Assembly: GCA_047495785.1 (NCBI GenBank) | Contig: JBLDXI010000013.1 | Coordinates: 4,663,704-4,727,703, forward strand | Length of the DNA: 64,000 nt | Source: Lepidodermella squamata | Taxonomy: Eukaryota > Animalia > Gastrotricha | Direction: 5' to 3' | Shown: positions 14,901-53,033 of the stretch, piece by piece | How the letters are laid out: each line of letters opens with the position of its first letter | Position numbering within the stretch: position 1 is the stretch's first letter | Notes under the pieces: model-generated | The model's database searches: none | What the model saw: the letters and a program-made list of their open reading frames with translations, nothing else | What the model was told of the DNA's origin: nothing | Translations under genes and position numbers: made by a program

Positions 14901-15717
14901 TTTTCAGAGATAAAACACGTTGTCGCTCTTTGATGGGCAAATTTTAAAAAGGTTTCAGTCTTCAGCTATTCATGACAGAAAAATTTACTTTGAAAAGCTA
15001 CTTTTGATAACTTACCACACTGAGACTGTGTTTGCTCACAAGCTCGTTGACTCGCGCAAAGACTTTTCGCCATACAAAAGCCCAGACCGGCTGAACACCT
15101 CGAACAAGGCGTGCCATCGATATACGGCAACGCGGCAATTCGCCGCGGCGCACCGTCAGCGAAATAACAAACCAGCCGGCCGTCATCGCAAACATCGCTA
15201 TGCGAACAGCCGACAAACGCCGATTCAGCCCAAACCAGTTGAAGAAAGTTTTTACACGACAAATCAACACAGTCCCAAGTTATGTTGAAGTGATACTGCT
15301 TCCTCTCGATCAGCCATTTATTGAGCAGGGTCGACATATTCACGACCTGGCCCACCCCCAGAGCGACTACATAGCCGATCAAAGGGTAGGGCTTGAAAGG
15401 TATCGTCTTGCTGAGGGCTAACATTTGCTCAGAACCACAGCGGGTTATGCTATTTTGCAACCGAGATTGCGCTTCTAATCGATCGTCCCATTCCTAAATC
15501 GAAAAATCGGGCTGAAATAATACAAAAATTGTCCGCGCAGTCGACAAACCAAAACCCGCATATTCGCACTGGGCGGGAATTCTGAGAAATCACCGATCGC
15601 AACTCTTCGGCGCAGGTTGTTGATAACATTGAGAATTGTTTGTTTTTGCGGTTTCGATAAAACAGCCTCGGTAACAGGTAATAAAATCAGCAACAAAATA
15701 AACCGCCAACGAGTCAT
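11958..15717 (-). CDS. Secreted CAP/SCP (CRISP-like) protein with EGF-like and ShKT domains; last exon unresolved
   Basis: Exons 15717-15550, 15493-15016, 14590-14445, 12249-11958. Signal peptide MTRWRFILLLILLPVTEA. CAP motifs ILNVINNLRRRVA...PPSANMRVLEWDDRLE and QLVWAESAFVGC. Hinge PYIDGTPCSRC. EGF CAHG.FD..TCSCTCHTGWSGARC. ShKT CSDIRPDC.....GAC......HMERECRVTCGYC. A donor at 11957 implies a further exon, or read-through to the stop at 11869. Confidence 0.85.
12571..12747 (+). mobile_element. Degenerate Gag-like zinc-knuckle remnant in the CAP-gene intron
   Basis: Translates to ...PIGPQCFGCFEYGYMRYQCPN..., a CX2CX4(H>Y)X4C pattern, with no accompanying pol ORF. Confidence 0.5.
13500..14130 (+). 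mobile_element. Decayed non-LTR retrotransposon (CR1/L2-group-like) ORF2 C-terminal remnant
   Basis: LKYNQRLLKFDLLYFNQMWLIRDLAMAFEII (about 13548-13640) and FSFVRTAKLWNLLPASINSLTSL (about 14023-14092) resemble the typical Y..RL..L.L..L..RR...DL...FKII and F..R....WN.LP motifs; interrupted by stops. Confidence 0.65.
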
Positions 15718-15899: not shown

Positions 15900-16283
15900 T
15901 TACAGGCGAATGCTGTCGAGATACTTACGCATACGCGCGACAGCCTGTTCGTATAGCGAAATATCAAGATCGGGTACGCTGCGCATAATTGTCGCGCTAA
16001 TAGTATACGCGGCTAACGAAGTCGGCGATGCACCGGAAGTCGACGCCACGTTTAATGCGCCTACTATTTGAACAAGTTCACCTGGCTGGGCGCGTTGATG
16101 GCCGACGACGCCGGACAAATCGACTCCAATCGTATGGCCACGATCCGACAAAGACGACATGCCGCGTTGCAGGACACCCGTCGTGCGTATTGTTTGCCCG
16201 AGTATCAGCTTTCCCGACTTAACAAAATCGACGACTTCTGGTAGAAAGACTATAGTTGCGTAATTAGGCAGAGGTGCGTCCAT
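15900..16283 (-). CDS. TEN1: CST complex subunit TEN1 (telomere OB-fold), intronless
   Basis: 127 aa; LP...VFLPEV...GQTIRTTGVL...G.LVQIVG.L...ATIMRSVPDLDISLYEQAVARMRKYL parallels the TEN1 pattern (RTFGRL...GSLYIVLGEL...ARVLTCVEGMNLPLLEQAI) from memory. Confidence 0.8.
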   Translation of the reverse strand: MDAPLPNYATIVFLPEVVDFVKSGKLILGQTIRTTGVLQRGMSSLSDRGHTIGVDLSGVVGHQRAQPGELVQIVGALNVASTSGASPTSLAAYTISATIMRSVPDLDISLYEQAVARMRKYLDSIRL

Positions 16284-30400: not shown

Positions 30401-33400
30401 GAAGCAGATGGCATGAAAATTACTCACCCGCATGAAATTTTAGAAAAATCACGGAAAATTCAGAAAAAACTCGGCATTTTCCCCCTTTCATAAAAATTGA
30501 AAAATTCGAGAAAACACAGTACCTGTAACTTGCATGAATTTTTATTAATTATTTGTGAATACATTTAATTTATTTTTCAATTCATTTATTTTAGGAACAA
30601 CTTCAACCGGGGCTGCTGCTGCGGGTAAGAAAGCCCGAGGAAGGGCGACTACCGTCTCGCCCCCACCTGGAGCTGATGGCGCCGATGGTACTATGACTGG
30701 TGATTTGGAGGGCGGTGGAAATCGCGGTATCCCTGTCACAAATTTCAGGTGGATCATTCCGCCAAAAGGCGAAGCTGTGATGCGGTAAGTAAAGCCTAAA
30801 ATGGTCAGAATTAGGAAAAAAAATGAATTAAATCGGAAATTTCAATTTTGAGTTTGTTCTTCGGAATTTGAAAATTTGAAAATCGAAACTTCAAAATTCG
30901 AATTTAAATTATTGACATTTTTTTGATTGCTTTGAAAAATTCGGAAAATTGACAATTCAATTTTTTTAAATTTAAAAATTGATCTAATAATTCTATAAAA
31001 TTTGTATTTTTTCTTCAGAATTCACTTCCATAGCGATGACACTGGCCAATTCGATCAAGTCTACAATTTCGAAATCATGGGCACATCCCGTAAATACCAG
31101 CTATTCTTACGCGGAATCGCCTGTTTCCCAAGCATCTGCAAAGAACCACGCGTTCTATTCCCGAATCGCAAAAAGAACCGCGCCAAGGACGAAATCGTGT
31201 GTAAAAAGTACGTCATACAGGAGGAGCTATTCGACTTTGGCCCGTTGCTGATCGGTAAATCGCGCGATGGCTTCAAAGACGCAAGCCGTTTCCCTGAAAA
31301 CAGTTCAACTTTCGTCATCATGAACAACAAATCAATCGACGCCGAATGTACTTTCTGCTTCTTAAACGACGCTAAGGGCGATATTTTCCTATTAAATCCG
31401 CCTCAAATGACGTTGAAGCCGAACGAGCAGCAAGAGTTGAAGGTATGGGCCTTCCCGAGAACAGTCGGTGAATTTGAGGACACCCTGGTTTGCTGTGTCC
31501 GGGAGAACCCGGAGCCTGTTACGTGGAAGCTGCGCTGCTTTGGCGCTAGGCCTGAGCTAGAATTGGACAAGAAATTGCTGGCGTTCGAGAAAATTCTACT
31601 TTTCCGAAAGGAGACAAAATCAGTCACCCTGCGTAATAAAACCTTGATACCAGTCGCGTGGAGGTTAACCGGCCTCGACGCCCTGGGTGACGATTTTTCA
31701 GTCGCCTCAGACTCCGGAATCATCCAGCCGCGATCTGAATACCAGCTTCATTTGCATTTCAAAGCATCCCGCCCTGTTATTTTACAGAAAAAGTACATCC
31801 GCATCGAAATCTCTGATGCGGAAAACGTACTCGGCGTCATCCAAACCGAGTCGATTCAGGTCCAGGCCGAGTGTTACGACGTAGCCCTGGATTTGATGTT
31901 CCCGAAAGAGCGGGGCGGTCAAGATTACTTGGATTTCGGGACGCTGCGGGTCAATGCGGAAGACAAGCAGCAGTTGACGTTGAAAAATCGCGGAAAATAC
32001 GAATTTCAGGTCCTTTTCGACCTAGTTCAACCCGAGGGCGTTAAAATGCCTGATGTTAAATCGCTGTTCCAAATCATCCCAGCGCATGAAACACTACCGG
32101 CAACGGCTTCGAAGACAATAACCGTTGTTTTCTGCCCGAAACAAGAGGTCAAAATTTTGGATGCGCCGATAATTAAATGCTACATCAAGGAGCCAAGTCA
32201 ACCGGAACAGAGCCAGAAAATCGGTGAAATTACGATCAAAGTCTCAGGCCGGTCGCTTTACTCGAAATACCGCCTAACCCCATCGACTGATATCAATTTT
32301 GGCACGTTGTTGGTCAACGCAAGGAAATCAACGAAATTCACGATTGAAAATACGGGCGAATTCGAGTTTAAATACACGATTTTTTCGGTGTCGCCCAAGG
32401 CGCCGGCTGATGCGAATAAACAGGCGGCGAATGCGGCGCAAAAAGCTGGCCGGGGCCTGGCGTCGCGTGTTTCGTCGCGAAGTATCAAAGATGGAACGGT
32501 GACTGGCAGTGTTCAGGCGATTGATAAGTCGCAGTTGATAACTCAGACGAGATTGGCCGTGGATATGTTCACGATTGCGCCTGGTTTCACGTCGACGCCG
32601 ATTCCGCCGAATTCTTACCAGGAAATCACTGTCGAGTGCCTGGCTGACCGGGAGGGAAAATCTGAAACGGTTTGTGCTGCTTGAATTTTAAAATGGCAAA
32701 TTCATTTTGATTAGTGAAGTCATCATTCATAGTTGTAGCCGGTTTAAATTGAATTAGCTTGACGCTCAACATTGGAAAGAAGCATCAGATCGCTCTTGTG
32801 ATGAATGTGATCTTTGCTGATTTTGAGTCATGGATACCTTGAATGGTTTCCACCTTTTTTCGACAATCTCTGTAAATTTCGCGCAAACTTGAACGCGGTA
32901 AATTTCACTTTACGAGATGCACACGGCAAGCATTTTACTGAAATACTATATTCACTCGGATCATAGGTCATAGGTATATTGAATATTTCCCAACACCATC
33001 AAACATGATAAGCTTGGCGAAAATTCCTGACTCTAAAACCCCACTCTGGTTTCCTCAAAGCGAGAGTTAATAGCCGTACTCATTATTTCATGCAAGGCTT
33101 GCTCCATATTTAACGGCCTCCTTTAATGTTTCCTTTAATGGCCAACTGGGGGTTATCAGGGCTACCGTCGAGTAAGAGACGGGCTGAGGGTTCCTCGAGT
33201 GAGAGCCTTGCAGAGGGTTCATCGATCGAGAGACGGGCAGTGGGTTCCTCGAGTGAGAGCCTTGCAGAGGGTGCATTCCAAGCGGCCCGGATGGAGCTTG
33301 CTGGATTAGCGCTCCACACTGCTACTGCTGCCTGAGAGTATCAAGTAGTTTTTGCATTCGAACTGAGCCCTATCAGCTAAAGAAACTTACTATAAGCAGC

Positions 33401-36400
33401 ATTGCATCCAAGACCTTGTTCATTCTACTAGAAGTGGGTAAACGGGAAATAATATTTTAGATAATGAAGCATGCATAGCATACCTCCTAATTTATAGGCC
33501 GAGCCGATTCAACTTTGCATCTGTATAAACTTTTCAGATATCTCCCGTGAAATTCACGTTTCGTTCATGTGAAATCAACAAGGGGTGAAACGGAAGGCTT
33601 AGCGTCAGTTAGCATACTATTTACATTTTACATTGTCAAATTATCTGACGCAAAACAATTCTCTTGACCTTTTCGAACTCAAAATAATTGCTGTAAAACA
33701 AATTCTTCTTAATTATTTAAGTGCATGTAAATTATATACGAAAATTAGAAATATAATGATCATGCTTATAACATTTTCTCAAAATTTTGAGCGTTTACTT
33801 CCGTTATCATACGGCTCCTTTCAATGTTTACTCAAGATTCTTGTAAAAAATTTCTTCCTGACTAGAAACGTTCTACTTGCGTTGCTTATGCGCGTTTTTC
33901 GCACTGAGAAGCGCGATATATTTCGCCTCTGTTAACCCAGCTCCTTTCAATATTTACTTAAGGGTCTGATAATACATCCGCTGTAAGTCTCTGCCGTTGA
34001 TGACAATATGCTTATGCATGTACAAAATTGATAATTAAATTAATTTTTAATTGTGAACTTTGAACTTAGACAATTTTTTCCATTTCAGACCCTCCTGATC
34101 GAGATAACCGACCGCGACCCTGGCAACAACCCCGGCGGTATCCCGTACCGCCTCGTTGCCGAAGGCTGTGCGCCAACCATCAACAATTCCGACTACCGGG
34201 ACGTTTTCGAAGAGCACACAATCATCAAAAGCATCATGGGCTGGCAGAGCCTACTGCGGCCGCACATGGGCCTCGCCGAGTTCGTCGGCGGCGTGTTCGG
34301 CGAGAGCGAGAAACGCTTCGTATTCCCGCCGGTTCTCGTCTCGAAACGCGCGACAGCTCGGTTCAAGCTATCAAACAACAGCCGAGTGCCGTCAGACATC
34401 GCCATCGCAGTTCGGCCGGTCTCAATGACGCAAACCACGTCGTCGAAGCACAGTCAGGCCGCCGCAGCCGCTGCCGCGAAAATCGTCGATGTTTTCGACG
34501 TCTCCCCCGCCCGGGCTCAGATCCCACCGAAAGGCAGCGTCTACGTCGACGTTTCATTCAGCCCAGCGGCTATTCATCAGTACATGGCTGTGTTCGAGGC
34601 GGGTCTCGAGGGGGCGAATGCCGCTAAATCCGTCCCACTTAAATTCGATATAATGGGCGAAGGTCACCTGCCGCGAGTCTCAGTGATAAAACCGACGATT
34701 TTGAATAAACGAGGCCAACCCGCCTTAATTTTCCGCCGGACGCTGCTAGGGTGTTCAGACGAGGCGACGTTCGAGTTGTCTAACGACGGGACTCTACCAT
34801 CGAAAGTCACGATCGATATAACCGACCCAGTCTCGTGTTTCCGGGTCGAATCCCTCCAACCGACCCCGTTGGAAATTACCGAAATCACCGATGATTCACC
34901 CCCAGTTACAGCCCTGAAGACTAAAGCGATAACTGAGACAGTCTTAGTCGGAAAAACAGCGTTGTATAAGGTGATTTTCTCGCCAACCAGCGCTGTTCGT
35001 TCGATAGGCGGGGTGCGAATTCGTGTTGAAGATAACCCGTACGAAGACACGGTTATCCAGCTGATCGGCGAGTCCTACGACGAGCCGGTTTCACTCGCGA
35101 ATGTTCGCAGCGCCCTAGGCATCACCGACGCGCCGCCGCCCCCGCCGCCGCCACCTGCGCCGGGTGATAAAAACGCCGCGGCGGCGGCTGCGGCAGCGAA
35201 CCAGGCCAACTCGGCGCTGCGTGAAATCGACGAGCGTTCGGAGCCTGTCCGGAACCAGGTCATGAATTTCGGCGACACAAAACTCAACGAACCGTCGACT
35301 CTAACGTTTGATATCGTCAACAAATCTGACCAGTTCATTCGATTCGTCTGCCCGGACCATCCGCATTTGAAATTTTCGCCCCATATCGGGCATATTGCGC
35401 CGAAAAAATCGAAAGAAATCAGCGTGACGCTGTACGTCGAACAGCCGGTCACGCATCGTGAGGTCGTAGTACCGATCAAATTTTCGCGAATTGTCCCCGA
35501 AAATGCGGACTTGTCGCTAGATTGGGATGATAAGAAAAAGCTGGTTCGCTGGGTCGAATCAACCGCGGCCCGGGTCCCGGGTGCGAAGCGTAAGGTCACC
35601 GAAGCGGAACCTGAACCGCCGTACAGCGACGTACCTGAGAGTAATAAAAACCTTGACCTCCGCGTATCGGCTATCGTCCAATACGCGAAAATTAAGTGTG
35701 AGACGAAGCAGATTCATTTCAAGGACACCCTGATGTTCCAAACCCGGGTTGTTGAGGTCAAGGTGTCTAATGCGGGTGACGTGCGGGCGCATTACAACTG
35801 GGTACTTGACCTACCCTCCCGGCCAGCTACCGACCCGGCTGAGATAATGCCAATGTCGCGACCTGTGACCCCGAGTATCATGACCCCGCGACCTTTCAGC
35901 GGAAATCGGTTCTTTTTAGACGTCAACGGAGCTGCGGCGATTGAGACACCCTGGACGGCTCTTGACATGTCGACACCTTCGTATGACCCGTTTGTTGTCG
36001 AACCACCGTTCGGGAGTATTGAACCGAATCAGAGCCAGGTGTTTAAAATCAAATTCGCCCCGCTTGACCTGGGCGATATTTCCGGAAATATCCAACTCCA
36101 TGTGTCAAACGCGAATCCTGAAAACAGAATTTTCCACACTATCGCGGTTAAGGCGAGGAGTTTACTGCCGTGGTGTCACTTCGAGTTACCAGATTCTGAG
36201 TATTTAGTCAAGCGGAACGTTGAGCTACCCGGGCCCCAGGGTCGACCGCCCGGCACCAAGCTGGACCCTAACACCCGGGCGATTGAGTTCAGCGTAGTCG
36301 GGGTCGGACTTACTACAACGAAAATTTTCTCGGTTTTGAACCCGACGAATAAACGGTACCACTTCGAATGGGTCAACGACGATATGGATGACCCGAAACG

Positions 36401-39400
36401 GGTGCCTTGTGTCACCTGCCGCACCCCACATGGCATCATCGGGCCGGGTGAAAAGGTCCATATGCAGTTCGATTTCGTGTCGAATGGCATTGGGCTATTT
36501 GAATCTTTCTGGAACTTCGCGATTCGGGAATTGAACATCATTGTCCCGTTCGTAGTCGTGGGTGAGGTCGCGGATCCTCGGGTGATTTTCGCTCAGACCC
36601 AGGTTAACTTCAAAAACATGTTGGTCGGTTATGAGGCGAATGAAACCGTTGAATTGGTCAATATGGAAACCGCCCCGTTGGCTTTCACCGTCGATCCGAA
36701 TACTGTCTTCACGCAAGGCTTCGCTGCGAAATTGGAGGTCGACCCCATGAGTGGGACGATCCCGGGCAAGGGTGTTGTGCCGATCAGGGTGACGTATCGC
36801 CCGGCATCTGAAATGGCGGTCAACTTCAATGTTTCGGTGAAAATCGAGCATAAAGTTATGCCGGTCACGCTCAATGTTAAAGCTGAAGGCTTCACGATGC
36901 ATGCGCTCGCGGCGGTTATCGATAATGCTGGAAATCGAACCGAACTCACGACGAAAGGCATCACTCAGGTCTGAAATTTTTCCAAAATATTTCTTTAAAT
37001 TTTTTAGAATTTAATTTAATTTTAAATTTTAAATTTTGAATTTCAATTTATTTTCAAAAATTATCCGAAAAGAAATTTTAAATTTTCCTAGAACTTTGAG
37101 ACAATTTTCAAATTTTTGGAGAAATTTTCATTAATTTTTGGAAATGTAATTTTTTTATAACTTTCTAGGTCAATTTTATGGAAGTTCAAATCAACGAGAA
37201 GGCCGTTCGAACCGTTTCGATCGTCAACAACGGAAAATTCAACTTCGCCTACCGCTGGGACACGAATTTCCCGAAAGTTTTCGCCGACGCCCTCACAGTT
37301 GAGCCCGCCGAGGGCATTATTCTAGCCCAGGGCAAGGGCGAGTGTCTCGTCAAATTTTGCCCGCGCCAGAAAATGGCCCTTCAAAAATGCGAAGCGCGCC
37401 TCGTTGTAGTCGACGGGCCGTCATTTGGCGTTCACTTCAGCGGATCAGCCCGCGAGCCCGGGCTCCACTTTTCGTTCATCGAACACGATTTCGGACCGTC
37501 CTTCGTGTTCAAACCCGGCCTTCCGCCTAAAACAGCCACGTTGACAATCACAAATCGCGATCAACGTGAGCATAGCCTCGAATGCCTCTACCAAACGACA
37601 CCGCATTTGGTACATAACATGGAGCAAGTCTACCTGGTAAAACCCGACCAAACGGTAGATATCGTTTTCAACTTCTACCCGCGCGAGGTTAGGAAGTACA
37701 CGGAGAAAATTGTCTTTGAAATGAACGGAATCAGCCAGCAAGTTGTGACCATCCGCGGCTCGGGCAGTGAGTTCAGCCTAGTCTGCGCCAACCCGAAGCA
37801 ACGCCTCGTCAAATTAGGCGCGCTTAAAACCGGCGATTCAGTCAAGCGTGTCGTTCCGATAATCAATCAAACTTCGGTTGATTTGAAGTTTAAACTCAAT
37901 CTAATCCCATCTAACGCGTTGTTGAAGAATTATTTGAGCCTAGACACGAAGAGTAAGAGCCTAGAGTTGGTTTTGAAGCCTCGCGAACAGCATAACGTTG
38001 AGGTTTCATTCTCGCCGCATAGCAGGGTGCCTCAATTTACGGAAGAGGTCGTGGCTGAGTGCATCGGAATCACGCAGCCGATTTTCGCCGTAACCGGGTG
38101 TTGCCAGGCTGTTGAAGTCTCGCTAGACATGGAGTACATTTCATTCGGCGCTGTGGTACTAAGATCCCAAGCTTCGCGGCGTGTCCTAATGCAGAATAAC
38201 GGCGATATCGGGGCGAAATTTGAATGGGAACAGGGAAAATTCTCGCCGAATTTTACCATGTCGCCCATGTCCGGGTATTTGACCCCGGGTATGTCTGTTG
38301 AGTTGGAAGTCACCTACCACCCGACTTCAACCACCTTGGAATGCCGAGTTGATAAGGCGAAGTGTATCGTCGAAGGTATGAAAAAGCCGTTGTCTATGAC
38401 GCTAACTGGTAGTTGCGTTCAAATGCCTGTCCCTCAACGTGAATCTATCCATTTTTCGACGGTTGTTCGACAAAAGGAGACTAAGCCGTTGCTAATCGGA
38501 AACCGGACCAATCAACTATGGACGCTGAGGCCTGTTATCGAGGGTGAGTACTTCAGCGGCCCGGAGCTGGTGGTTGTCGAGCCGCAGCAGAATAAGTCGT
38601 TTGAAGTCAGCTATCAGCCGCTGACCATGACAACCGAGGGCAAGAAGCATACCGGGTCGATATTTTTCGCCACCCCAGACGGCCAGGGTCTGTTGTACAC
38701 CGTTACCGGGTCGGCTGATCCGCCTAAGGTGTCTGGTCGGATCCAGCGGGAGGTTCCGTTCAAAACTCAATATGTCGAAGTGCTGCAGGTTGAGAATTGG
38801 TTGAAGCGGCCGCAGAGGTTTAAGATGAAGATGGAACCGATAAAGCCGGATAAATTGGACCCGGGTACGACAATCAAGGGCTTGGACTACATCGATGTGC
38901 CGGGTCTGGTGAAGAAGGACTACCGTCTCACGTTTTTCGCGTACAAGGAAGCGACTTACCTGGTCAAGGTAAGCGCAATTATTCTGAATTTTACGATTTG
39001 TTAAGGTCTAAAATTGAGCAAAATGAGAAATCCAACATGCATTGGATTGAATTAAACATGTAGAAAATAAAAAATCAAAAGGATTCAAAAAAGGATCAAT
39101 CTAGGATTTAAGTCACACTCGTTATCGGGATTCCAAAATTAGATCAAAGAGATCAAAAATAGCGAACTTGTCTTAATTTTTGAAAAATCGATGAATTTTC
39201 AGCAGATATTAAATGGAACAGAAACAAGAAAATGTGAAAATTTGGGAAAAATTCCAATTATTCCTAAAAATTACGCCAACATTTGGGATTTTCATAAAAA
39301 TTTTCAAATTTCGAACTTTTCAAATAAATTTAATTGAATGTTTAATCCTATGATGTTGCAGCTAAAAAATGTCTAAATTTTCCTCTAGAAATATTTTTTT

Positions 39401-42285: not shown

Positions 42286-43204
42286 TCAGGGTACCTCGAT
42301 GGAGAGACGAGCTGAGGGTTCCCCAACCGCGAGACGTGCTGAAGGTTCCTCGATGGAGAGACGAGCTGTGGGTTCCCCAACCGCGAGACGGGCTGAAGGT
42401 TCCTCAATCGAGAGACGAGCTGAGGGTTCCCCAACTGCTAGACGAGCTGAGGGTTCCCCAACCGCGAGACGGGCTGAAGGTTCCTCAATCGAGAGACGAG
42501 CTGAGGGTTCCCCAACCGCGAGACGGGCTGAAGGTTCCCCAACCGCTAGACGAGCTGAGGGTTCCCCAACCGCGAGACGGGCTGAAGGTTCCTCGATGGA
42601 GAGACGAGCTGTGGGTTCCCCAACCGCGAGACGGGCTGAAGGTTCCTCGATGGAGAGACGAGCTGTGGGTTCCCCAACCGCGAGACGGGCTGAAGGTTCC
42701 TCGATGGAGAGACGAGCTGAGGGTTCCCCAACCGCGAGACGTGCTGAAGGTTCCTCGATGGAGAGACGAGCTGTGGGTTCCCCAACCGCGAGACGGGCTG
42801 AAGGTTCCTCGATGGAGAGACGAGCTGTGGGTTCCCCAACCGCGAGACGGGCTGAAGGTTCCTCGATGGAGAGACGAGCTGTGGGTTCCCCAACCGCGAG
42901 ACGGGCTGAAGGTTCCTCGATGGAGAGACGAGCTGTGGGTTCCCCAACCGCGAGACGGGCTGAAGGTTCCTCGATGGAGAGACGAGCTGAGGGTTCCCCA
43001 ACCGCGAGACGGGCTGAAGGTTCCTCGATGGAGAGACGAGCTGAAGGTTCCTCAATCGAGAGACGAGCTGAGCCAGTTGGATTCGCGCTCGTGGACCACA
43101 CAGCTACTGCGGCCTGAGAAAATTACCTAGTTTTACAACAAAACATGAACCTATCACGGAATGAAACTTACTACTAGCAGCATTGAAACCAAACGCTTGT
43201 TCAT
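42286..43204 (-). CDS. Secreted repeat-peptide precursor, paralog 2 (286 aa, 29 x 9-aa repeats)
   Basis: Exon 43204-43172 (MNKRLVSMLLV), 58-nt GT-AG intron, exon 43113-42286 (AAVAVWSTSANPTG then SARLSIEEP / SARLAVGEP / TARLSIEEP x29). TATAAAA near 43278-43284. Confidence 0.8.
42289..43071. repeat. Coding minisatellite, 27-bp monomer with 54-bp higher-order alternation
   Basis: gagacgagctgwgggttccccaaccgc alternates with gagacgggctgaaggttcctcgatgga. Confidence 0.95.
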
Positions 43205-45430
43205 TCTGCTAGAAGTGGATTTAAGAGTAAGAGAAATACAAAATTGAAATGATGAAATATGCATTCGTTACCCCCAATTTTATAAGCCTGACTGATTCAA
43301 CCTTGCATCTGTATAAATATTCCTGATGTTTCACGTGAAATTCACCTTTTGTTCACATGTGAAATCATCAACGGGCGAAATTGAAGGCTTACTGTCAGTT
43401 AGTATGGCTATTTACATTGTTAGCGTTAACTTGGTAAATTTTCTGACGCAATATTTATGCTTATAAAACTTTCTCGAACTTTGAACGGGGATAGCTTTCG
43501 CATCCCTTCTCATACGGCTCCTTTCAATATTTACTCAAGATTCAATTATGATGAATTATATCTTGTTTAAAAATTGTCTTCTTGACTCGATAACAGCGAA
43601 ATTCTACTTGCTTGTACACGTTTTTCGAGCTGAGAAGCGCGATAATTTTGCTCCTGTTAACCTAGCTCCTTTCAATATTTACTGAATAGTCAAATAAAAT
43701 ACATCCGCTGTAAGAATTGTCTTCCCCGCAGGAATAATTAATTAATCAGGTTAATCTAATCTCTAGGGCAGGAATAATAATATGATAATAACATTATCAT
43801 AATATTATTATATCAAGTTTTCAGCATGCAAAAATTGATGATTAAATTGAATGCTTATATAATTATGAACTTGGACAATTTTTTCCATTTCAGACCCTCC
43901 TGATCGAGATAACCGACCGCGACCCTGGCAACAACCCCGGCGGTATCCCGTACCGCCTCGTTGCCGAAGGTTGTGCGCCAACCATCAACAATTCCGACTA
44001 CCGCGACGTCTTGGAAGAGCGCACCATCATCAAAAGCATTATGGTCTCAGTGTCAGGACAAGCGAGTCTCAGTGATAAAACCGACGATTTTGAATAAACG
44101 AGGCCAACCCGCTTTAATTTTCCGCCGGACCCTGCTAGGGTGTTCAGACGAGGCGACGTTCGAGCCGTCAAACGACGGAACTCTACCATCGAAAGTCACG
44201 ATTGATATAACCGACCCAGTCTCGTGTTTCCGGGTCGAATCCCTCCAACCGACCCCGCTGGAAATTACCGAAATCACCGATGATTCACCCCCAGTTACAG
44301 CCTCAAAGACAAAAGCGATAACTGAGACAGTCTTAGTCGGAAAAACTGCGTTGTATAAGGTGATTTTCACGCCAACCAGCGCTGTTCGTTCGATAGGCGG
44401 GGTGCGGATTCGCGTTGAAGATAACCCATACGAAGACACGGTTATCCAGCTGATCGGCGAGTCTTACGACGAGAATCACAGACGCGCCCTCGCCCCCGCC
44501 GAAAATCAGATTCGCCCCACTTGACCTGGGCGATATTTACGGGAATATCTAACTCCACGTGTCGAACGCGAATCCTGAAAACAGAATTTTTCATACAATC
44601 GCGGTTAAGCGAGGGGTTTGCTGCCGTGGTGTCACTTCGAGTTACCGGATTGTGAGTATTTAGTCAAGCGGAATATTAAGCTACTCAGGCCTCAGGGCCT
44701 GCCCGCCGACAGCCGGGCTCCTAGCTGGACCCTAAAACCCGCGCGATTGAGTTCAGCGTAGCCGGGGTCAGAATTACTACAGCCAAAATTATCTCTGTTT
44801 TGAACCCGACGAATAAACGGTACCACTTCGAATGGGTCAGCACTGATACACTGATACACTGATTTATTTTTGCAATTTGTCTCGCGACGTTTAGCAATTA
44901 AAAAGGGTCGAGGCGCCTCACCACTGATATAGTATATTGTTCTAGTTCACAGGCAATGCTTCTAGTATATTTTACGAAATTAAAATGAGAGCTATTTACG
45001 ACCTCACAGGGTATAGACGCAGCTCAACAGCAAGCGATCGGTGCCAACCAATGGGTCTACTATACCTGAGAGGGGTGTCGTAAGGAAACATCCTGATGGA
45101 AAACTTACCAACAATATTGATCTCATTCATTATACTCCAACTGTGATATCATTTTTAATAACAAATCCATTCATTATAAATGATTTTATTGCAACGTATG
45201 TATTGCTTATAATCTTAGCGATTTTAAAATGATAGGTAACACTGCTTATGATTTTCTCTGAGCAACACGATACTGTGATTTTTGACTGATGGTATACTTA
45301 TACAAAGATCAAACAGGCGTCTGTCATTTGAAATATTCGTAATATATTTAAAATAAAGCAATTGCTCCTTATCTATCCAGTAAAATGACCAGAAATGCGA
45401 ACACGTCTAATTTCTGTTTAAAATAATGCC

Positions 45431-46285
45431 TCATACGTCTTCTACTTTCCTGAACCTCAACCAGTCAGGTACAGTAAAATCGTCCAGGGAAAAGTTCTCA
45501 GTAGTTTTTGAGGAACAAGGCCTGTAAAGGAATTGGCCGCCGATTCGGAACCATTTGTTAGTCACCCATTTTTCACCCCGCAAAACTGGACATCCGCTGT
45601 GGAGCGTCCGCTCATCTGCCACCTCGTTTTTGCGATAGTTGTACCAGAAAATACCGGCCTTCTTAGGAATAAAATCATGCCATAACACGACAAGCGGGTC
45701 CAAGTTGATAACTTCTTCCTTCACTGGTGATAGAATCAGCAAAGGATGCCGACCTCTGTCATCGTAGCGGCAGAAGCGTTTCGGGTCTCTCGCGAGGGCT
45801 TTTAGCTGCACATTTGCTTCGCCATCTCGACATATCTCGTACTCTGATGTCGCTGCTAATTTCTCGGCCGCGGACATCCTTTCCTCCAGAGGCTTTGTGT
45901 CGAAGTCATTTGGCTCGGCAGGTGTTTTCACCTGGGACATGTAGTAATTCTTCCAAGAAGTCAGGTGTTTTAGCAAGTTATCATCGGTTCTTGGCATCTT
46001 GTTTAATGCAAGGTTGCAAAGGAAAAGAGCCTCCAATTTTTTACCAAGGCCGAATGCGGCGTACTGCATGTAGTCGAGGATTTCCGATTCTCGTATCGAG
46101 CCAATTTCGCTGGCATATGTACTGTTGAAAACTCGCCAAGCATTGAGCGCTGCTGCGTAGAGTTCTTCGAACTTCTTGGCATCTGACAGTTCCTGCAACG
46201 GTTTGTACGCTTCGTAGAGTTCAGTTGAAGTTTCTGAACCAGTTGACAACTTGAACGTTAGCAAAAGGATGAGGGCAATACTCAT
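45431..46285 (-). CDS. Prolyl 4-hydroxylase alpha-like protein, intronless, with in-frame deletion of the catalytic core (predicted inactive)
   Basis: Signal peptide; TPR-like substrate-binding region (EILDYMQYAAF..G...EA); YEICR, FCRY....HPLLILSPVKEE....DP.VVLWHDFI; then directly FWYN...DERTLHSGCPVLRGEKWVTNKWF...GQ...RPC. No HxD segment. Confidence 0.8.
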   Translation of the reverse strand: MSIALILLLTFKLSTGSETSTELYEAYKPLQELSDAKKFEELYAAALNAWRVFNSTYASEIGSIRESEILDYMQYAAFGLGKKLEALFLCNLALNKMPRTDDNLLKHLTSWKNYYMSQVKTPAEPNDFDTKPLEERMSAAEKLAATSEYEICRDGEANVQLKALARDPKRFCRYDDRGRHPLLILSPVKEEVINLDPLVVLWHDFIPKKAGIFWYNYRKNEVADERTLHSGCPVLRGEKWVTNKWFRIGGQFLYRPCSSKTTENFSLDDFTVPDWLRFRKVEDV

Positions 46286-46350
46286 TGTAAAAACTTGATA
46301 ACCAGATTTTTGGAGTACTAATGGTTGATGAAATTGAGCACTATAAGTTT

Positions 46351-46395
46351 ATATCCAACGTTTCGGTTATTTTCCATAACCTTCTTCAAGGATAT
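46351..46395 (-). ncRNA. Minimal type-I hammerhead ribozyme-like motif (Penelope type), present in every array unit
   Basis: Minus strand reads atatcc-TTGAAGA-a-GGTTAT-ggaaa-ATAACC-GAAA-CG-TT-ggatat: 6-bp stem I, core with C3U, 6-bp stem II, palindromic AACGTT in place of stem III. Confidence 0.7.
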
Positions 46396-46591
46396 CAAGG
46401 GTAACATTTCCGCATGAAGTTGATATTATAAAATTAAGGCGGAAATTTTAAATTAGCGTTAGTGAGGATTATAAGCCTAATCTGATCCAGTAAGTTGAGC
46501 TATTCTAACTAAAATTTTCTCGGCTTGTTCGACTGCACTTCTCATGAAAGATGGACTCCGTGAAGAGTTTCGCCTTAATCGAATCGAATTG

Positions 46592-46636
46592 GTATCCCTG
46601 AAGATGGTTATGAAAAAGAACCGAAACGTTGGATAT
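46592..46636 (+). ncRNA. Minimal type-I hammerhead ribozyme-like motif (Penelope type), opposite polarity, present in every array unit
   Basis: gtatcc-CTGAAGA-t-GGTT-atgaaaaag-AACC-GAAA-CG-TT-ggatat: canonical CUGANGA/GAAA core with stems I and II. Confidence 0.72.
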
Positions 46637-47213
46637 AAACTTATAGCGCCCAATCTCTTTGTAAAAGGATGTATAATAGGTACTAATAGTCAGTAATTTT
46701 TACATCTTTGCGCCCGAATGAATTTTTTAACCGCTATTTGTTGAATCACCTGCCTGTGTTATTGAATGATGACTGCGTAGAGTTCTTACATCTTTGTAGT
46801 CCGTTAACGCACGCAGCGAACCTATCTGAAGGATGGCGGTCATTACAAAGCATGACAATGGACGGCACCGCAAATAATAAGACTCTCAAGGAGAACTCGG
46901 CGAGCTTCATAGTATCTGAGGATGGAAAAGGCTGAAACGATCGAATTACTTGTGGTCTAATATTTCTCACCTTCAGTTCTATGTATCAGGTGCTTCACCA
47001 AATCTCAACTTTTTCATATCAATATTGATGTAACATTGCTCTCACAATTTTTAAGTGCTATGCTATGCTTGCGCTTGGATTTCAGGATAGATGAGCGATC
47101 AGTATGTGAAGGATCCAGCCTATAAATTCATGTCAATCTTGCAGTTTCTCTCGAAATTCTCGCCGGCAAATATAACGTGAACGCTCATATGATGGATCGC
47201 CCTTCTGGCACTA

Positions 47214-47972
47214 TCAGACCCCAGAAAGTTTGGAAACGCCCAACAAGCTGCCGGTGCTCAGCCGAGGGACTAACAAGTATGGCAAAGAGTTAAAGCAGGC
47301 TTGTCGAAATTTAGCCGTTGCTTTTTCGATCAGCTGTGTGCCGTACTTCTTAGGAATAAAATCATGCCATAACACGACAAGCGGGTCCAAGTTGATAACT
47401 TCTTCCTTCACTGGTGATAGAATCAGCAAAGGATGCCGACCTCTGTCATCGTAGCGGCAGAAGCGTTTCGGGTCTCTCGCGAGGGCTTTTAGCTGCACAT
47501 TTGCTTCGCCATCTCGACATATCTCGTACTCTGATGTCGCTGCTAATTTCTCGGCCGCGGACATCCTTTCCTCCAGAGGCTTTGTGTCGAAGTCATTTGG
47601 CTCGGCAGGTGTTTTCACCTGGGACATGTAGTAATTCTTCCAAGAAGTCAGGTGTTTTAGCAAGTTATCATCGGTTCTTGGCATCTTGTTTAATGCAAGG
47701 TTGCAAAGGAAAAGAGCCTCCAATTTTTTACCAAGGCCGAATGCGGCGTACTGCATGTAGTCGAGGATTTCCGATTCTCGTATCGAGCCAATTTCGCTGG
47801 CATATGTACTGTTGAAAACTCGCCAAGCATTGAGCGCTGCTGCGTAGAGTTCTTCGAACTTCTTGGCATCTGACAGTTCCTGCAACGGTTTGTACGCTTC
47901 GTAGAGTTCAGTTGAAGTTTCTGAACCAGTTGACAACTTGAACGTTAGCAAAAGGATGAGGGCAATACTCAT
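47214..47972 (-). CDS. Truncated P4HA-like ORF (252 aa), array copy
   Basis: Same N-terminal 209 aa as 45431-46285; P4H-like to ...ATAKFRQA, then an unrelated tail. Confidence 0.65.
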   Translation of the reverse strand: MSIALILLLTFKLSTGSETSTELYEAYKPLQELSDAKKFEELYAAALNAWRVFNSTYASEIGSIRESEILDYMQYAAFGLGKKLEALFLCNLALNKMPRTDDNLLKHLTSWKNYYMSQVKTPAEPNDFDTKPLEERMSAAEKLAATSEYEICRDGEANVQLKALARDPKRFCRYDDRGRHPLLILSPVKEEVINLDPLVVLWHDFIPKKYGTQLIEKATAKFRQACFNSLPYLLVPRLSTGSLLGVSKLSGV

Positions 47973-48900
47973 TGTAAAAACTTGATAACCAGATTTTTGG
48001 AGTACTAATGGTTGATGAAATTGAGCACTATAAGTTTATATCCAACGTTTCGGTTATTTTCCATAACCTTCTTCAAGGATATCAAGGGTAACATTTCCGC
48101 ATGAAGTTGATATTATAAAATTAAGGCGGAAATTTTAAATTAGCGTTAGTGAGGATTATAAGCCTAATCTGATCCAGTAAGTTGAGCTATTCTAACTAAA
48201 ATTTTCTCGGCTTGTTCGACTGCACTTCTCATGAAAGATGGACTCCGTGAAGAGTTTCGCCTTAATCGAATCGAATTGGTATCCCTGAAGATGGTTATGA
48301 AAAAGAACCGAAACGTTGGATATAAACTTATAGCGCCCAATCTCTTTGTAAAAGGATGTATAATAGGTACTAATAGTCAGTAATTTTTACATCTTTGCGC
48401 CCGAATGAATTTTTTAACCGCTATTTGTTGAATCACCTGCCTGTGTTATTGAATGATGACTGCGTAGAGTTCTTACATCTTTGTAGTCCGTTAACGCACG
48501 CAGCGAACCTATCTGAAGGATGGCGGTCATTACAAAGCATGACAATGGACGGCACCGCAAATAATAAGACTCTCAAGGAGAACTCGGCGAGCTTCATAGT
48601 ATCTGAGGATGGAAAAGGCTGAAACGATCGAATTACTTGTGGTCTAATATTTCTCACCTTCAGTTCTATGTATCAGGTGCTTCACCAAATCTCAACTTTT
48701 TCATATCAATATTGATGTAACATTGCTCTCACAATTTTTAAGTGCTATGCTATGCTTGCGCTTGGATTTCAGGATAGATGAGCGATCAGTATGTGAAGGA
48801 TCCAGCCTATAAATTCATGTCAATCTTGCAGTTTCTCTCGAAATTCTCGCCGGCAAATATAACGTGAACGCTCATATGATGGATCGCCCTTCTGGCACTA

Positions 48901-49659
48901 TCAGACCCCAGAAAGTTTGGAAACGCCCAACAAGCTGCCGGTGCTCAGCCGAGGGACTAACAAGTATGGCAAAGAGTTAAAGCAGGCTTGTCGAAATTTA
49001 GCCGTTGCTTTTTCGATCAGCTGTGTGCCGTACTTCTTAGGAATAAAATCATGCCATAACACGACAAGCGGGTCCAAGTTGATAACTTCTTCCTTCACTG
49101 GTGATAGAATCAGCAAAGGATGCCGACCTCTGTCATCGTAGCGGCAGAAGCGTTTCGGGTCTCTCGCGAGGGCTTTTAGCTGCACATTTGCTTCGCCATC
49201 TCGACATATCTCGTACTCTGATGTCGCTGCTAATTTCTCGGCCGCGGACATCCTTTCCTCCAGAGGCTTTGTGTCGAAGTCATTTGGCTCGGCAGGTGTT
49301 TTCACCTGGGACATGTAGTAATTCTTCCAAGAAGTCAGGTGTTTTAGCAAGTTATCATCGGTTCTTGGCATCTTGTTTAATGCAAGGTTGCAAAGGAAAA
49401 GAGCCTCCAATTTTTTACCAAGGCCGAATGCGGCGTACTGCATGTAGTCGAGGATTTCCGATTCTCGTATCGAGCCAATTTCGCTGGCATATGTACTGTT
49501 GAAAACTCGCCAAGCATTGAGCGCTGCTGCGTAGAGTTCTTCGAACTTCTTGGCATCTGACAGTTCCTGCAACGGTTTGTACGCTTCGTAGAGTTCAGTT
49601 GAAGTTTCTGAACCAGTTGACAACTTGAACGTTAGCAAAAGGATGAGGGCAATACTCAT
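48901..49659 (-). CDS. Truncated P4HA-like ORF, array copy
   Basis: Translation identical to 47214-47972. Confidence 0.65.
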   Translation of the reverse strand: MSIALILLLTFKLSTGSETSTELYEAYKPLQELSDAKKFEELYAAALNAWRVFNSTYASEIGSIRESEILDYMQYAAFGLGKKLEALFLCNLALNKMPRTDDNLLKHLTSWKNYYMSQVKTPAEPNDFDTKPLEERMSAAEKLAATSEYEICRDGEANVQLKALARDPKRFCRYDDRGRHPLLILSPVKEEVINLDPLVVLWHDFIPKKYGTQLIEKATAKFRQACFNSLPYLLVPRLSTGSLLGVSKLSGV

Positions 49660-50587
49660 TGTAAAAACTTGATAACCAGATTTTTGGAGTACTAATGGTT
49701 GATGAAATTGAGCACTATAAGTTTATATCCAACGTTTCGGTTATTTTCCATAACCTTCTTCAAGGATATCAAGGGTAACATTTCCGCATGAAGTTGATAT
49801 TATAAAATTAAGGCGGAAATTTTAAATTAGCGTTAGTGAGGATTATAAGCCTAATCTGATCCAGTAAGTTGAGCTATTCTAACTAAAATTTTCTCGGCTT
49901 GTTCGACTGCACTTCTCATGAAAGATGGACTCCGTGAAGAGTTTCGCCTTAATCGAATCGAATTGGTATCCCTGAAGATGGTTATGAAAAAGAACCGAAA
50001 CGTTGGATATAAACTTATAGCGCCCAATCTCTTTGTAAAAGGATGTATAATAGGTACTAATAGTCAGTAATTTTTACATCTTTGCGCCCGAATGAATTTT
50101 TTAACCGCTATTTGTTGAATCACCTGCCTGTGTTATTGAATGATGACTGCGTAGAGTTCTTACATCTTTGTAGTCCGTTAACGCACGCAGCGAACCTATC
50201 TGAAGGATGGCGGTCATTACAAAGCATGACAATGGACGGCACCGCAAATAATAAGACTCTCAAGGAGAACTCGGCGAGCTTCATAGTATCTGAGGATGGA
50301 AAAGGCTGAAACGATCGAATTACTTGTGGTCTAATATTTCTCACCTTCAGTTCTATGTATCAGGTGCTTCACCAAATCTCAACTTTTTCATATCAATATT
50401 GATGTAACATTGCTCTCACAATTTTTAAGTGCTATGCTATGCTTGCGCTTGGATTTCAGGATAGATGAGCGATCAGTATGTGAAGGATCCAGCCTATAAA
50501 TTCATGTCAATCTTGCAGTTTCTCTCGAAATTCTCGCCGGCAAATATAACGTGAACGCTCATATGATGGATCGCCCTTCTGGCACTA

Positions 50588-51346
50588 TCAGACCCCAGAA
50601 AGTTTGGAAACGCCCAACAAGCTGCCGGTGCTCAGCCGAGGGACTAACAAGTATGGCAAAGAGTTAAAGCAGGCTTGTCGAAATTTAGCCGTTGCTTTTT
50701 CGATCAGCTGTGTGCCGTACTTCTTAGGAATAAAATCATGCCATAACACGACAAGCGGGTCCAAGTTGATAACTTCTTCCTTCACTGGTGATAGAATCAG
50801 CAAAGGATGCCGACCTCTGTCATCGTAGCGGCAGAAGCGTTTCGGGTCTCTCGCGAGGGCTTTTAGCTGCACATTTGCTTCGCCATCTCGACATATCTCG
50901 TACTCTGATGTCGCTGCTAATTTCTCGGCCGCGGACATCCTTTCCTCCAGAGGCTTTGTGTCGAAGTCATTTGGCTCGGCAGGTGTTTTCACCTGGGACA
51001 TGTAGTAATTCTTCCAAGAAGTCAGGTGTTTTAGCAAGTTATCATCGGTTCTTGGCATCTTGTTTAATGCAAGGTTGCAAAGGAAAAGAGCCTCCAATTT
51101 TTTACCAAGGCCGAATGCGGCGTACTGCATGTAGTCGAGGATTTCCGATTCTCGTATCGAGCCAATTTCGCTGGCATATGTACTGTTGAAAACTCGCCAA
51201 GCATTGAGCGCTGCTGCGTAGAGTTCTTCGAACTTCTTGGCATCTGACAGTTCCTGCAACGGTTTGTACGCTTCGTAGAGTTCAGTTGAAGTTTCTGAAC
51301 CAGTTGACAACTTGAACGTTAGCAAAAGGATGAGGGCAATACTCAT
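50588..51346 (-). CDS. Truncated P4HA-like ORF, array copy
   Basis: Identical translation. Confidence 0.65.
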   Translation of the reverse strand: MSIALILLLTFKLSTGSETSTELYEAYKPLQELSDAKKFEELYAAALNAWRVFNSTYASEIGSIRESEILDYMQYAAFGLGKKLEALFLCNLALNKMPRTDDNLLKHLTSWKNYYMSQVKTPAEPNDFDTKPLEERMSAAEKLAATSEYEICRDGEANVQLKALARDPKRFCRYDDRGRHPLLILSPVKEEVINLDPLVVLWHDFIPKKYGTQLIEKATAKFRQACFNSLPYLLVPRLSTGSLLGVSKLSGV

Positions 51347-52274
51347 TGTAAAAACTTGATAACCAGATTTTTGGAGTACTAATGGTTGATGAAATTGAGC
51401 ACTATAAGTTTATATCCAACGTTTCGGTTATTTTCCATAACCTTCTTCAAGGATATCAAGGGTAACATTTCCGCATGAAGTTGATATTATAAAATTAAGG
51501 CGGAAATTTTAAATTAGCGTTAGTGAGGATTATAAGCCTAATCTGATCCAGTAAGTTGAGCTATTCTAACTAAAATTTTCTCGGCTTGTTCGACTGCACT
51601 TCTCATGAAAGATGGACTCCGTGAAGAGTTTCGCCTTAATCGAATCGAATTGGTATCCCTGAAGATGGTTATGAAAAAGAACCGAAACGTTGGATATAAA
51701 CTTATAGCGCCCAATCTCTTTGTAAAAGGATGTATAATAGGTACTAATAGTCAGTAATTTTTACATCTTTGCGCCCGAATGAATTTTTTAACCGCTATTT
51801 GTTGAATCACCTGCCTGTGTTATTGAATGATGACTGCGTAGAGTTCTTACATCTTTGTAGTCCGTTAACGCACGCAGCGAACCTATCTGAAGGATGGCGG
51901 TCATTACAAAGCATGACAATGGACGGCACCGCAAATAATAAGACTCTCAAGGAGAACTCGGCGAGCTTCATAGTATCTGAGGATGGAAAAGGCTGAAACG
52001 ATCGAATTACTTGTGGTCTAATATTTCTCACCTTCAGTTCTATGTATCAGGTGCTTCACCAAATCTCAACTTTTTCATATCAATATTGATGTAACATTGC
52101 TCTCACAATTTTTAAGTGCTATGCTATGCTTGCGCTTGGATTTCAGGATAGATGAGCGATCAGTATGTGAAGGATCCAGCCTATAAATTCATGTCAATCT
52201 TGCAGTTTCTCTCGAAATTCTCGCCGGCAAATATAACGTGAACGCTCATATGATGGATCGCCCTTCTGGCACTA

Positions 52275-53033
52275 TCAGACCCCAGAAAGTTTGGAAACGC
52301 CCAACAAGCTGCCGGTGCTCAGCCGAGGGACTAACAAGTATGGCAAAGAGTTAAAGCAGGCTTGTCGAAATTTAGCCGTTGCTTTTTCGATCAGCTGTGT
52401 GCCGTACTTCTTAGGAATAAAATCATGCCATAACACGACAAGCGGGTCCAAGTTGATAACTTCTTCCTTCACTGGTGATAGAATCAGCAAAGGATGCCGA
52501 CCTCTGTCATCGTAGCGGCAGAAGCGTTTCGGGTCTCTCGCGAGGGCTTTTAGCTGCACATTTGCTTCGCCATCTCGACATATCTCGTACTCTGATGTCG
52601 CTGCTAATTTCTCGGCCGCGGACATCCTTTCCTCCAGAGGCTTTGTGTCGAAGTCATTTGGCTCGGCAGGTGTTTTCACCTGGGACATGTAGTAATTCTT
52701 CCAAGAAGTCAGGTGTTTTAGCAAGTTATCATCGGTTCTTGGCATCTTGTTTAATGCAAGGTTGCAAAGGAAAAGAGCCTCCAATTTTTTACCAAGGCCG
52801 AATGCGGCGTACTGCATGTAGTCGAGGATTTCCGATTCTCGTATCGAGCCAATTTCGCTGGCATATGTACTGTTGAAAACTCGCCAAGCATTGAGCGCTG
52901 CTGCGTAGAGTTCTTCGAACTTCTTGGCATCTGACAGTTCCTGCAACGGTTTGTACGCTTCGTAGAGTTCAGTTGAAGTTTCTGAACCAGTTGACAACTT
53001 GAACGTTAGCAAAAGGATGAGGGCAATACTCAT
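52275..53033 (-). CDS. Truncated P4HA-like ORF, array copy
   Basis: Identical translation. Confidence 0.65.
   Translation of the reverse strand: MSIALILLLTFKLSTGSETSTELYEAYKPLQELSDAKKFEELYAAALNAWRVFNSTYASEIGSIRESEILDYMQYAAFGLGKKLEALFLCNLALNKMPRTDDNLLKHLTSWKNYYMSQVKTPAEPNDFDTKPLEERMSAAEKLAATSEYEICRDGEANVQLKALARDPKRFCRYDDRGRHPLLILSPVKEEVINLDPLVVLWHDFIPKKYGTQLIEKATAKFRQACFNSLPYLLVPRLSTGSLLGVSKLSGV

Follow-up and report, generated by a model that had tools for sequence, protein, structure and literature searches.

A candidate gene for a secreted tandem-repeat product, antisense within an intron of a HYDIN-like gene

Analysis of a 64,000-nt stretch of a 121-Mb, 151-contig animal assembly (C13:4663704-4727703, hereafter the window, whose positions serve as coordinates unless a contig is given) led to the identification of an unannotated two-exon gene on the minus strand, here designated copy A (33110-33423), which lies wholly inside an intron of ~1.4 kb of a HYDIN-like gene, antisense to this host. 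Comparison with its paralogues supports the gene model well and, on the alignments, copy A has diverged furthest within a family of five loci, apparently restricted to this lineage. Judging from the sequence alone, copy A is very probably a real gene of an orphan family for a secreted tandem-repeat product. The overall reading that we favour, with a probability of about 0.5, is that of an unannotated coding gene for an exported repeat protein, acting whole.

Results

Structure of copy A and of its host intron

The features of copy A and of the surrounding HYDIN-like gene are as follows.

33424-33693, minus strand: promoter and 5' untranslated region (UTR), conserved and aligned over all nine loci of the family
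33496-33491, minus strand: TATAAA box, ~70 nt upstream of the ATG
33423-33421, minus strand: ATG start codon
33423-33391, minus strand: exon 1 (33 nt, 11 codons, MNKVLDAMLLI)
33390-33332, minus strand: intron (59 nt, gtaagt...ctcag, GT-AG, phase 0)
33331-33110, minus strand: exon 2 (73 codons plus the stop at 33112-33110)
33188-33268, minus strand: three full 27-bp units (SARLSLEEP, TARLSIDEP, SARLSLEEP)
33113-33187, minus strand: degenerate unit 4 (SARLLLDGSP) and unique tail ending KGNIKGGR, in copy A and its allele only
32920-33109, minus strand: 3'UTR, conserved and aligned in all members, including the copy with an unrelated payload
31002-32669, plus strand: upstream HYDIN-like exon, from Pfam domains and sequence
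~32670 to 34088, plus strand: host intron, donor GT near 32670, acceptor ...tttcag at 34088
34089-36974, plus strand: downstream HYDIN-like exon, following the acceptor ...tttcag at 34088

The initial annotation had described an 11-codon first exon spliced onto an open reading frame (ORF) of (S/T)ARLS(L/I)(E/D)EP repeats with a unique tail ending in Gly-Gly-Arg-stop, a signal-peptide-like N-terminus ahead of short tandem repeats, and a nested antisense position in a HYDIN intron. Every sequence feature that it listed was found in its place: repeats and tail are both present in exon 2, and the exon ORF flanking the intron (31002-32681) matches HYDIN/CFAP65 Ig-like and ASH domains in Pfam.

In the promoter, a TTCAT initiator-like motif lies ~30 nt 3' of the TATA box and is kept in every copy of the family, while the 5'UTR of copy A is ~42 nt long and contains no upstream ATG. 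The intron carries in-frame stops (tga tag) and its removal by splicing is therefore required; indeed, the start codon reaches the repeats only through intron removal, so that splicing would be needed for a repeat-containing protein. Introns in the window DNA measure ~59 nt; the longest exons of the HYDIN-like gene reach 1,708 codons.

Exon 1 consists of M-N-K followed by a hydrophobic run (mean Kyte-Doolittle value 2.3-3.7), and corresponds to the n-region plus the first half of a hydrophobic core; the core is completed by the opening of exon 2 (AAVAVW, 2.15), after which small residues follow. Read by eye across the junction, with the two exons handled apart, the joined N-terminus has an n-h-c layout resembling that of a signal peptide. 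Exon 2 then proceeds from the end of this region (AAVAVW, then SA/NP) through a short linker to the repeats, reported by Tandem Repeats Finder at 33168-33272 (period 27, 3.9 copies), and to the tail. In the 3'UTR, a tgaaataat motif (AATAA-type signal) is followed by the blocks gaaaccag.gtggggtttt and tcatgtttgatggtgtt.

A local family of nine loci and five genes

For the family census, three members served as DNA queries in searches of the complete assembly. Each query retrieved an identical set of nine loci, without any further match, and all of them fall within ~180 kb. They represent five genes (A-E), four of which occur on both haplotypes, i.e., contig C13 and contig C74, a haplotig that is 97-99% identical to C13 around copy A. 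On C13, copies C and D are located 17 kb and 13 kb before the window and are followed by A and B; C74 carries the four alleles and the fifth gene, E.

All nine loci have in common the TATA promoter, the ATG, an 11-codon exon 1 (MNK...), a phase-0 GT-AG intron of 58-62 nt with conserved ends (gtaagttt and ctc(t)ag), an exon 2 opening with AAVAVW(S/T)..ANP, and a shared 3'UTR with conserved blocks over ~190 nt. Exon 1 is the best conserved compartment, with 79-88% identity between paralogues. Identity drops to background ~270-400 nt upstream and ~190 nt past the stop, except where a larger duplication continues.

Paralogue B, the other member within the window, has the following structure.

42286-43204, minus strand: paralogue B, with exon 1 at 43204-43172, intron at 43171-43114 (58 nt) and exon 2 at 43113-42286

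It contains 29 nonapeptide units, SARLSIEEP alternating with SARLAVGEP, and its stop comes directly after a unit. A diverged paralogue keeping the TATA box, the ATG and both splice sites had been noted before and taken as an argument for selection; in paralogue B the reading frame proved to be kept as well, and the same architecture at all nine loci supports that argument.

What differs between members, and between the two alleles of a member, is the repeat payload.

Copy A: SARLS(L/I)(E/D)EP; 3 full units on C13, 6 on C74
Copy B: SARLSIEEP alternating with SARLAVGEP; 29 units on C13, 46 on C74
Copy C: SARLSIEEP and SARFSMGEP; 5 units on C13, 14 on C74
Copy D: unrelated 28-residue hydrophilic unit with Gly-Arg; 14 units on C13, a 30-codon second exon on C74
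Copy E: SARLEL(N/S)(E/Q)P; absent from C13, 9 units on C74

The C74 allele of copy A is longer by three units (81 bp, in frame), and its tail is the same. The two alleles of copy D, L007 (C13:4650358) and L008 (C74:77199), have exon 1 and the intron in common and a wholly different exon 2, made of fourteen 28-residue units with Gly-Arg in the former and of 30 codons with a single SARRL-like remnant in the latter, a large polymorphism for presence versus absence of the payload. Copy E (L009, C74:242490-242820), with its SARLELNEP units, had no counterpart on C13 in the three whole-genome DNA searches.

The homology between copies A and B, as well as that between A and C, continues into fragments of the HYDIN exon, indicating that these copies originated from a segmental duplication that took in the intron and a portion of the exon. 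Pieces of the exon at 34016-36375 adjoin copy B (43824-44839) and copy C (on C13, ~1 kb upstream of C, outside the window). They are 87-96% identical to the live exon, against only ~70% for the non-coding DNA next to them. Of the 18 differences in one 412-nt block of such a piece, 12 fall at third codon positions, and the ORF at 43961-44524 is open. The HYDIN fragment beside the paralogues is either still coding or kept alike through gene conversion.

The family intron (33332-33390 in A, 43114-43171 in B) is nearly as conserved as the exons, with 58-85% identity between paralogues (85% for A versus D). It includes an almost invariant block, tgatagg, of which gatagg is found in nine of the nine copies. 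Such high conservation could result from gene conversion or from a function of the intron.

Coding constraint on the repeat frame

All distinct 27-nt units of the family, 36 in number, were submitted to a codon test, in which minimum changes were counted by codon position and all six frames were compared. In the claimed frame, minimum changes at codon positions 1, 2 and 3 were 9, 4 and 18, respectively, and 27 of 95 codon-pair types were synonymous, as compared with 3-21 in the other five frames; the joint excess of third-position and synonymous changes is confined to the claimed frame. The Arg residue is invariant in all 36 units, yet two codons, AGG and CGT, are used for it. Three to four codons specify each of Ala, Ser, Leu and Pro (Ala GCA/GCC/GCT; Ser TCA/TCC/TCG/TCT; Leu four codons). 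Within copy A itself, one unit type departs from the other at 9 of 27 bases, including AGG versus CGT for Arg, and the only residues exchanged are S/T, L/I and E/D. Differences between paralogues in the AAVAVW(S/T) region of exon 2 are largely synonymous too. Moreover, the repeat periods of 27, 54 and 84 bp are all multiples of three, and every allelic length change is in frame.

Unit differences being mostly at third positions, the frame was therefore under selection at the protein level. This applies to the family: the two alleles of copy A differ at four non-synonymous and two synonymous sites and their coding part is no better conserved than the flanks, so that a present-day constraint on copy A itself is not supported.

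Searches for relatives

A word-index protein search with exon 2 of copy A gave no match at E <= 10, and a protein atlas queried with exon 2 of copy B gave a best score of 0.77 and no lead. When 1.84 billion representatives were searched exhaustively by phmmer, exon 2 of copy B had 555 matches at E <= 0.001. The top matches inspected were unrelated proteins with 9-residue acidic or proline repeats (e.g., PSKEDEVEE, AECGEPSTA); in none of the 150 listed of the 555 matches was the secretion cassette present, and no self match was obtained. A control search with a neighbouring Ten1-like ORF was also without match in the same protein collection, indicating that the species is absent from it and that blank searches say nothing on expression. 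An argument that a gene without public protein is not transcribed was dropped accordingly, the Ten1-like ORF being equally unmatched. A metagenome scan with a degenerate exon-1 pattern, in a collection from which records of this genome may be missing, gave no matches, and no RNA family was found by Rfam in 32700-34050. The protein searches made show no annotated or assembled relative of the putative family elsewhere.

The sole Pfam family to score was DUF6470, with 79 bits for copy B, 43 bits for copy E and 19.6 bits for copy A, the last being below the cut-off of 28.9. DUF6470 is YviE, a bacterial flagellum-associated protein of unknown function (PMC13277936). The likeness lies in a periodic P-x-A-x-L-x-I-type pattern in copies B and E, where profile positions ~1-65 of 178 are matched repeatedly, in six stretches. 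Unlike this bacterial family, the copy A family has an intron, a TATA promoter and a signal peptide-like start. The match is a periodic resemblance and not membership, which was rejected.

Other features of the window

A tandem array with a period of ~1687 bp occupies 45431-56305 and contains five near-identical 252-codon ORFs on the minus strand, flanked by variants of 284 and 218 codons; the 284-codon ORF had no match in Pfam. Three further minus-strand ORFs (2090-2836, 14966-15460 and 15900-16283) show SUEL-type lectin (below the cut-off), CAP/cysteine-rich secretory and Ten1 (CST complex) domains in Pfam, respectively. Two of these three are domains of secreted proteins, as the products of the copy A family would be.

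Discussion

Possible fate and function of the product

We infer that copy A would be transcribed and its two exons spliced, and that the resulting N-terminus would direct the product to the secretory pathway and be cut near the (S/T)SA|NP junction, so that an acidic, cysteine-free chain of P-(S/T)-A-R-L-x-hydrophobic-x-E nonapeptides would be exported. Each member of the family would combine a constant secretion cassette (TATA/initiator promoter, 11-codon exon, 58-62-nt phase-0 intron splitting the signal peptide, 3'UTR) with a fast-changing repeat payload, the arrays being lengthened and shortened by unequal crossing-over while selection retains the nonapeptide. We lean slightly towards a product that acts whole, to which we give not quite an even chance, rather than one cleaved into peptides. 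As to its role outside the cell, our preference is for, e.g., a product of glands, a coat or an adhesive, which in the long copies may have a strand-turn or solenoid-like form.

The composition of the SARL-type payloads is in line with a whole-acting chain: they have no cysteines and no dibasic sites, an isoelectric point of 4.7-4.9, and units in which a five-residue amphipathic stretch (R-L-x-hydrophobic-x) alternates with a Pro-containing turn. Repeat number differs two- to three-fold between haplotypes (29 versus 46, 5 versus 14 and 3 versus 6 full units), and such variation is common for secreted structural or adhesive repeat proteins. AlphaFold2 modelled exon 2 of copy B as a regular beta-solenoid with one strand per 9 residues (predicted local distance difference test, pLDDT, 87; predicted template modelling score, pTM, 0.84), while an antisense-frame ORF of the same array, used as control, gave pLDDT 44 and pTM 0.12. 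Foldseek found no match to this model in the PDB at E <= 0.001. A wide structural search retrieved beta-solenoids of all kinds, with 3p4g_A on top (Z 20.6, root-mean-square deviation 2.9, 248 residues).

Several points weigh against this reading. AlphaFold2 over-predicts such folds for near-perfect repeats (PMC11795689), and the modelled solenoid would lend weak support, as it may be an artefact of this kind, a concern that the one negative control leaves in place. Copies A and C have only 3-6 full units on some or both haplotypes, too few for a stable solenoid, and the model is inapplicable to copy D, whose unrelated and very hydrophilic 28-residue unit, with its 14 Gly-Arg sites, is more like a processed precursor. 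In addition, the invariant Arg and the (E/D)-(P/A)-S-(A)-R motif, which recurs even in D and in its allele D', would suit a conserved cleavage site. To these is added the absence of better conservation in the coding part of copy A than in its flanks, mentioned above.

Indeed, the same arrays can be read as a multi-copy precursor of bioactive peptides, with cleavage behind every invariant Arg once the signal peptide is removed, and subsequent trimming by a carboxypeptidase. The products would be L-x-hydrophobic-x-E-P-(S/T)-A octapeptides, to which copy A alone would add a tail peptide amidated at its C-terminus, and these peptides would serve as neuropeptides, pheromones or another secreted signal. 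We consider this the less likely of the two readings. It accounts for short tandem units, each with a single Arg preserved through two codon families, behind a signal peptide, and for frames that are intact even in short arrays; a cut after Arg would leave products that vary in their N-terminal half and agree in a C-terminal E-P-(S/T)-A, as is usual in peptide families, and families of secreted peptides typically combine a constant signal cassette with exchanged payloads. Sister copy D, with acidic spacers between its 14 Gly-Arg sites, resembles a processed precursor more closely, and copy A ends in Gly-Gly-Arg-stop on both haplotypes. Repeat number varies also in known polyprotein precursors, e.g., yeast MFalpha1 (PMC5850478), and monobasic Arg sites are in use in invertebrate precursors (PMC7179676).

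The processing signals themselves speak against it, and here three claims of the initial annotation were not supported. The lone Arg, which it had taken for a prohormone convertase mark, is preceded by Pro at P4, by Glu or Gly at P6 and by the previous Arg at P10, and Leu or Phe follows it at P1'; no dibasic site occurs in copies A, B, C and E, and no SARL-type unit has Gly before Arg. A monobasic convertase site, following a rule attributed to Devi in 1991, reportedly has a basic residue at P4, P6 or P8 and no aliphatic residue at P1'. Without a basic P4, P6 or P8 and with Leu or Phe at P1', the single-Arg site goes against this usual rule. The X-Pro and X-Ala dipeptides, interpreted earlier as dipeptidyl-peptidase marks, are on the wrong side: in the order E-P, S-A, R, L-x-hydrophobic-x-E they precede the Arg and, after cleavage, would be at the C-terminus of the product, where a dipeptidyl aminopeptidase could not act. 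The Gly-basic-stop amidation signal is private to copy A and its allele, B, C and E stopping right after a repeat (...EP-stop); the tail that bears it occupies the position of the 3'UTR in the other copies and ends 24 nt before the shared 3'UTR motif. SARL-type products would be acidic and unamidated. Reduction of copy D to a 30-codon second exon on the other haplotype would be unusual for an essential neuropeptide, and no homologue among known peptide-precursor families was found in the Pfam, word-index, atlas and phmmer searches. A more specific form of the proposal, i.e., a secreted signalling-peptide system of a little-studied invertebrate lineage, with an unconventional, invariant P-S-A-R|L cut site releasing x-x-x-x-E-P-S-A octapeptides and the amidated tail of copy A, seems to us improbable. 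If true, payload turnover would lead to peptide doses and repertoires that differ between individuals and haplotypes, e.g., in mate or kin recognition.

Two further explanations dispense with a functional product of copy A. It may be a decaying or silent duplicate of a once-functional family, with little or no product, the tail being a read-through into the former 3'UTR and the Gly-Gly-Arg-stop accidental. Copy A is the outlier of the family, with an Asp in the signal region, a loss of two codons before ANP, an inserted linker, the fewest units and the tail just described, and the four non-synonymous and two synonymous differences between its alleles, with coding DNA no better conserved than the flanks, point the same way. 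Against decay, the start codon, the TATA box and both splice sites are retained in the two alleles, which also have an open frame and share their stop, the 81-bp allelic indel is in frame, and unit types that differ in a third of their bases show conservative replacements only; we regard a silent copy A as a doubtful alternative. Far less credible still is a non-coding minisatellite in a mobile element or other non-genic repeat, whose frame would be open simply because the repeat contains no stops. Minisatellites inside elements do occur in repeat-rich genomes, and several frames of the long copy B array are open on both strands. However, the codon-position bias is specific to the claimed frame, and the conserved design of ATG, exon and intron brings the start codon to the repeats only after splicing; Rfam likewise gave nothing. 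The transposon-internal minisatellite, which the initial annotation had named as the case that would overturn its proposal, was rejected: the whole-assembly queries retrieved only nine loci, all local and none dispersed, without common element ends, the homology limits differing between pairs and running into the HYDIN exon pieces in B and C.

Whatever its product, copy A would escape standard annotation, having an 11-codon exon 1, a short and repeat-rich exon 2, no homologues and a position antisense within an intron of a large conserved gene. The family would illustrate how lineage-restricted secreted proteins are built and renewed, with a constant cassette copied by local segmental duplication and payloads that expand, shrink or are replaced. 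If the products act whole, as we favour, gland secretions, coats and adhesives are the candidate materials, and few proteins of this sort have been described from the animal group concerned; if they are cleaved, they would constitute a new peptide-signal system with an unusual processing site. Under either reading, the practical value is for the present modest.

Comparison with known systems

In design, the nearest analogues of the family are clusters of gland-product genes, polyprotein precursors of peptides, and the rotifer MMR genes. Among the first, the salivary glue proteins Sgs-3, Sgs-7 and Sgs-8 of the Drosophila 68C cluster have repeats that are rich in Thr, Pro and Lys and heavily glycosylated. 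Their genes are like those of the copy A family in forming a small local cluster and in having a very short exon 1, a small intron inside the signal peptide and a strong TATA promoter, and their payload of short tandem repeats also varies in length between alleles and members. No relation in sequence was found, and the units of the copy A family are, on the contrary, acidic nonapeptides with an invariant Arg. Precursors of frog-skin peptides and conotoxins share with the family a conserved signal-peptide exon and flanks around a diverged or swapped payload; theirs is single, mostly cationic or Cys-rich and released at dibasic sites, whereas that of the copy A family is an acidic tandem array without cysteines.

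The copy B model has coils of ~18 residues (two nonapeptides); its top match is the Ca2+-dependent antifreeze region of Marinomonas primoryensis (3p4g), and RTX repeats are nonapeptides as well. Copy B differs from both in having no GGxGxD calcium motif, and sequence identity is 13%. The match is generic, as every kind of beta-helix scores Z 12-19 with this model.

Honeybee apidaecin and promelittin are polyprotein precursors with spacer dipeptides. Like yeast MFalpha1, they have in common with the copy A family X-Ala and X-Pro dipeptides and basic residues in every unit. The layout is shared too, with a signal peptide, many short tandem units and a repeat number that is polymorphic within species, as in MFalpha1 (PMC5850478). 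These precursors use Lys-Arg or Arg-Arg, and their dipeptides come after the basic site, which exposes them to trimming by a dipeptidyl aminopeptidase at the new N-terminus, whereas SARL-type units of the copy A family have one Arg with the dipeptides before it.

The rotifer genes mmr-a and mmr-b, compared here by description only, have much longer repeats (261-276 bp, against units of 27 bp) and encode a globular glycoprotein with a shown function, the name MMR standing for mate-recognition protein motif repeat (PMC3495898). Their layout is otherwise like that of the copy A family: a signal peptide followed by 1-9 near-identical tandem repeats, several copies, and an evolution that is both concerted and rapid. 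The last MMR repeat is shortened and followed by a few non-homologous terminal codons, which may be compared with the altered last repeat of copy A.

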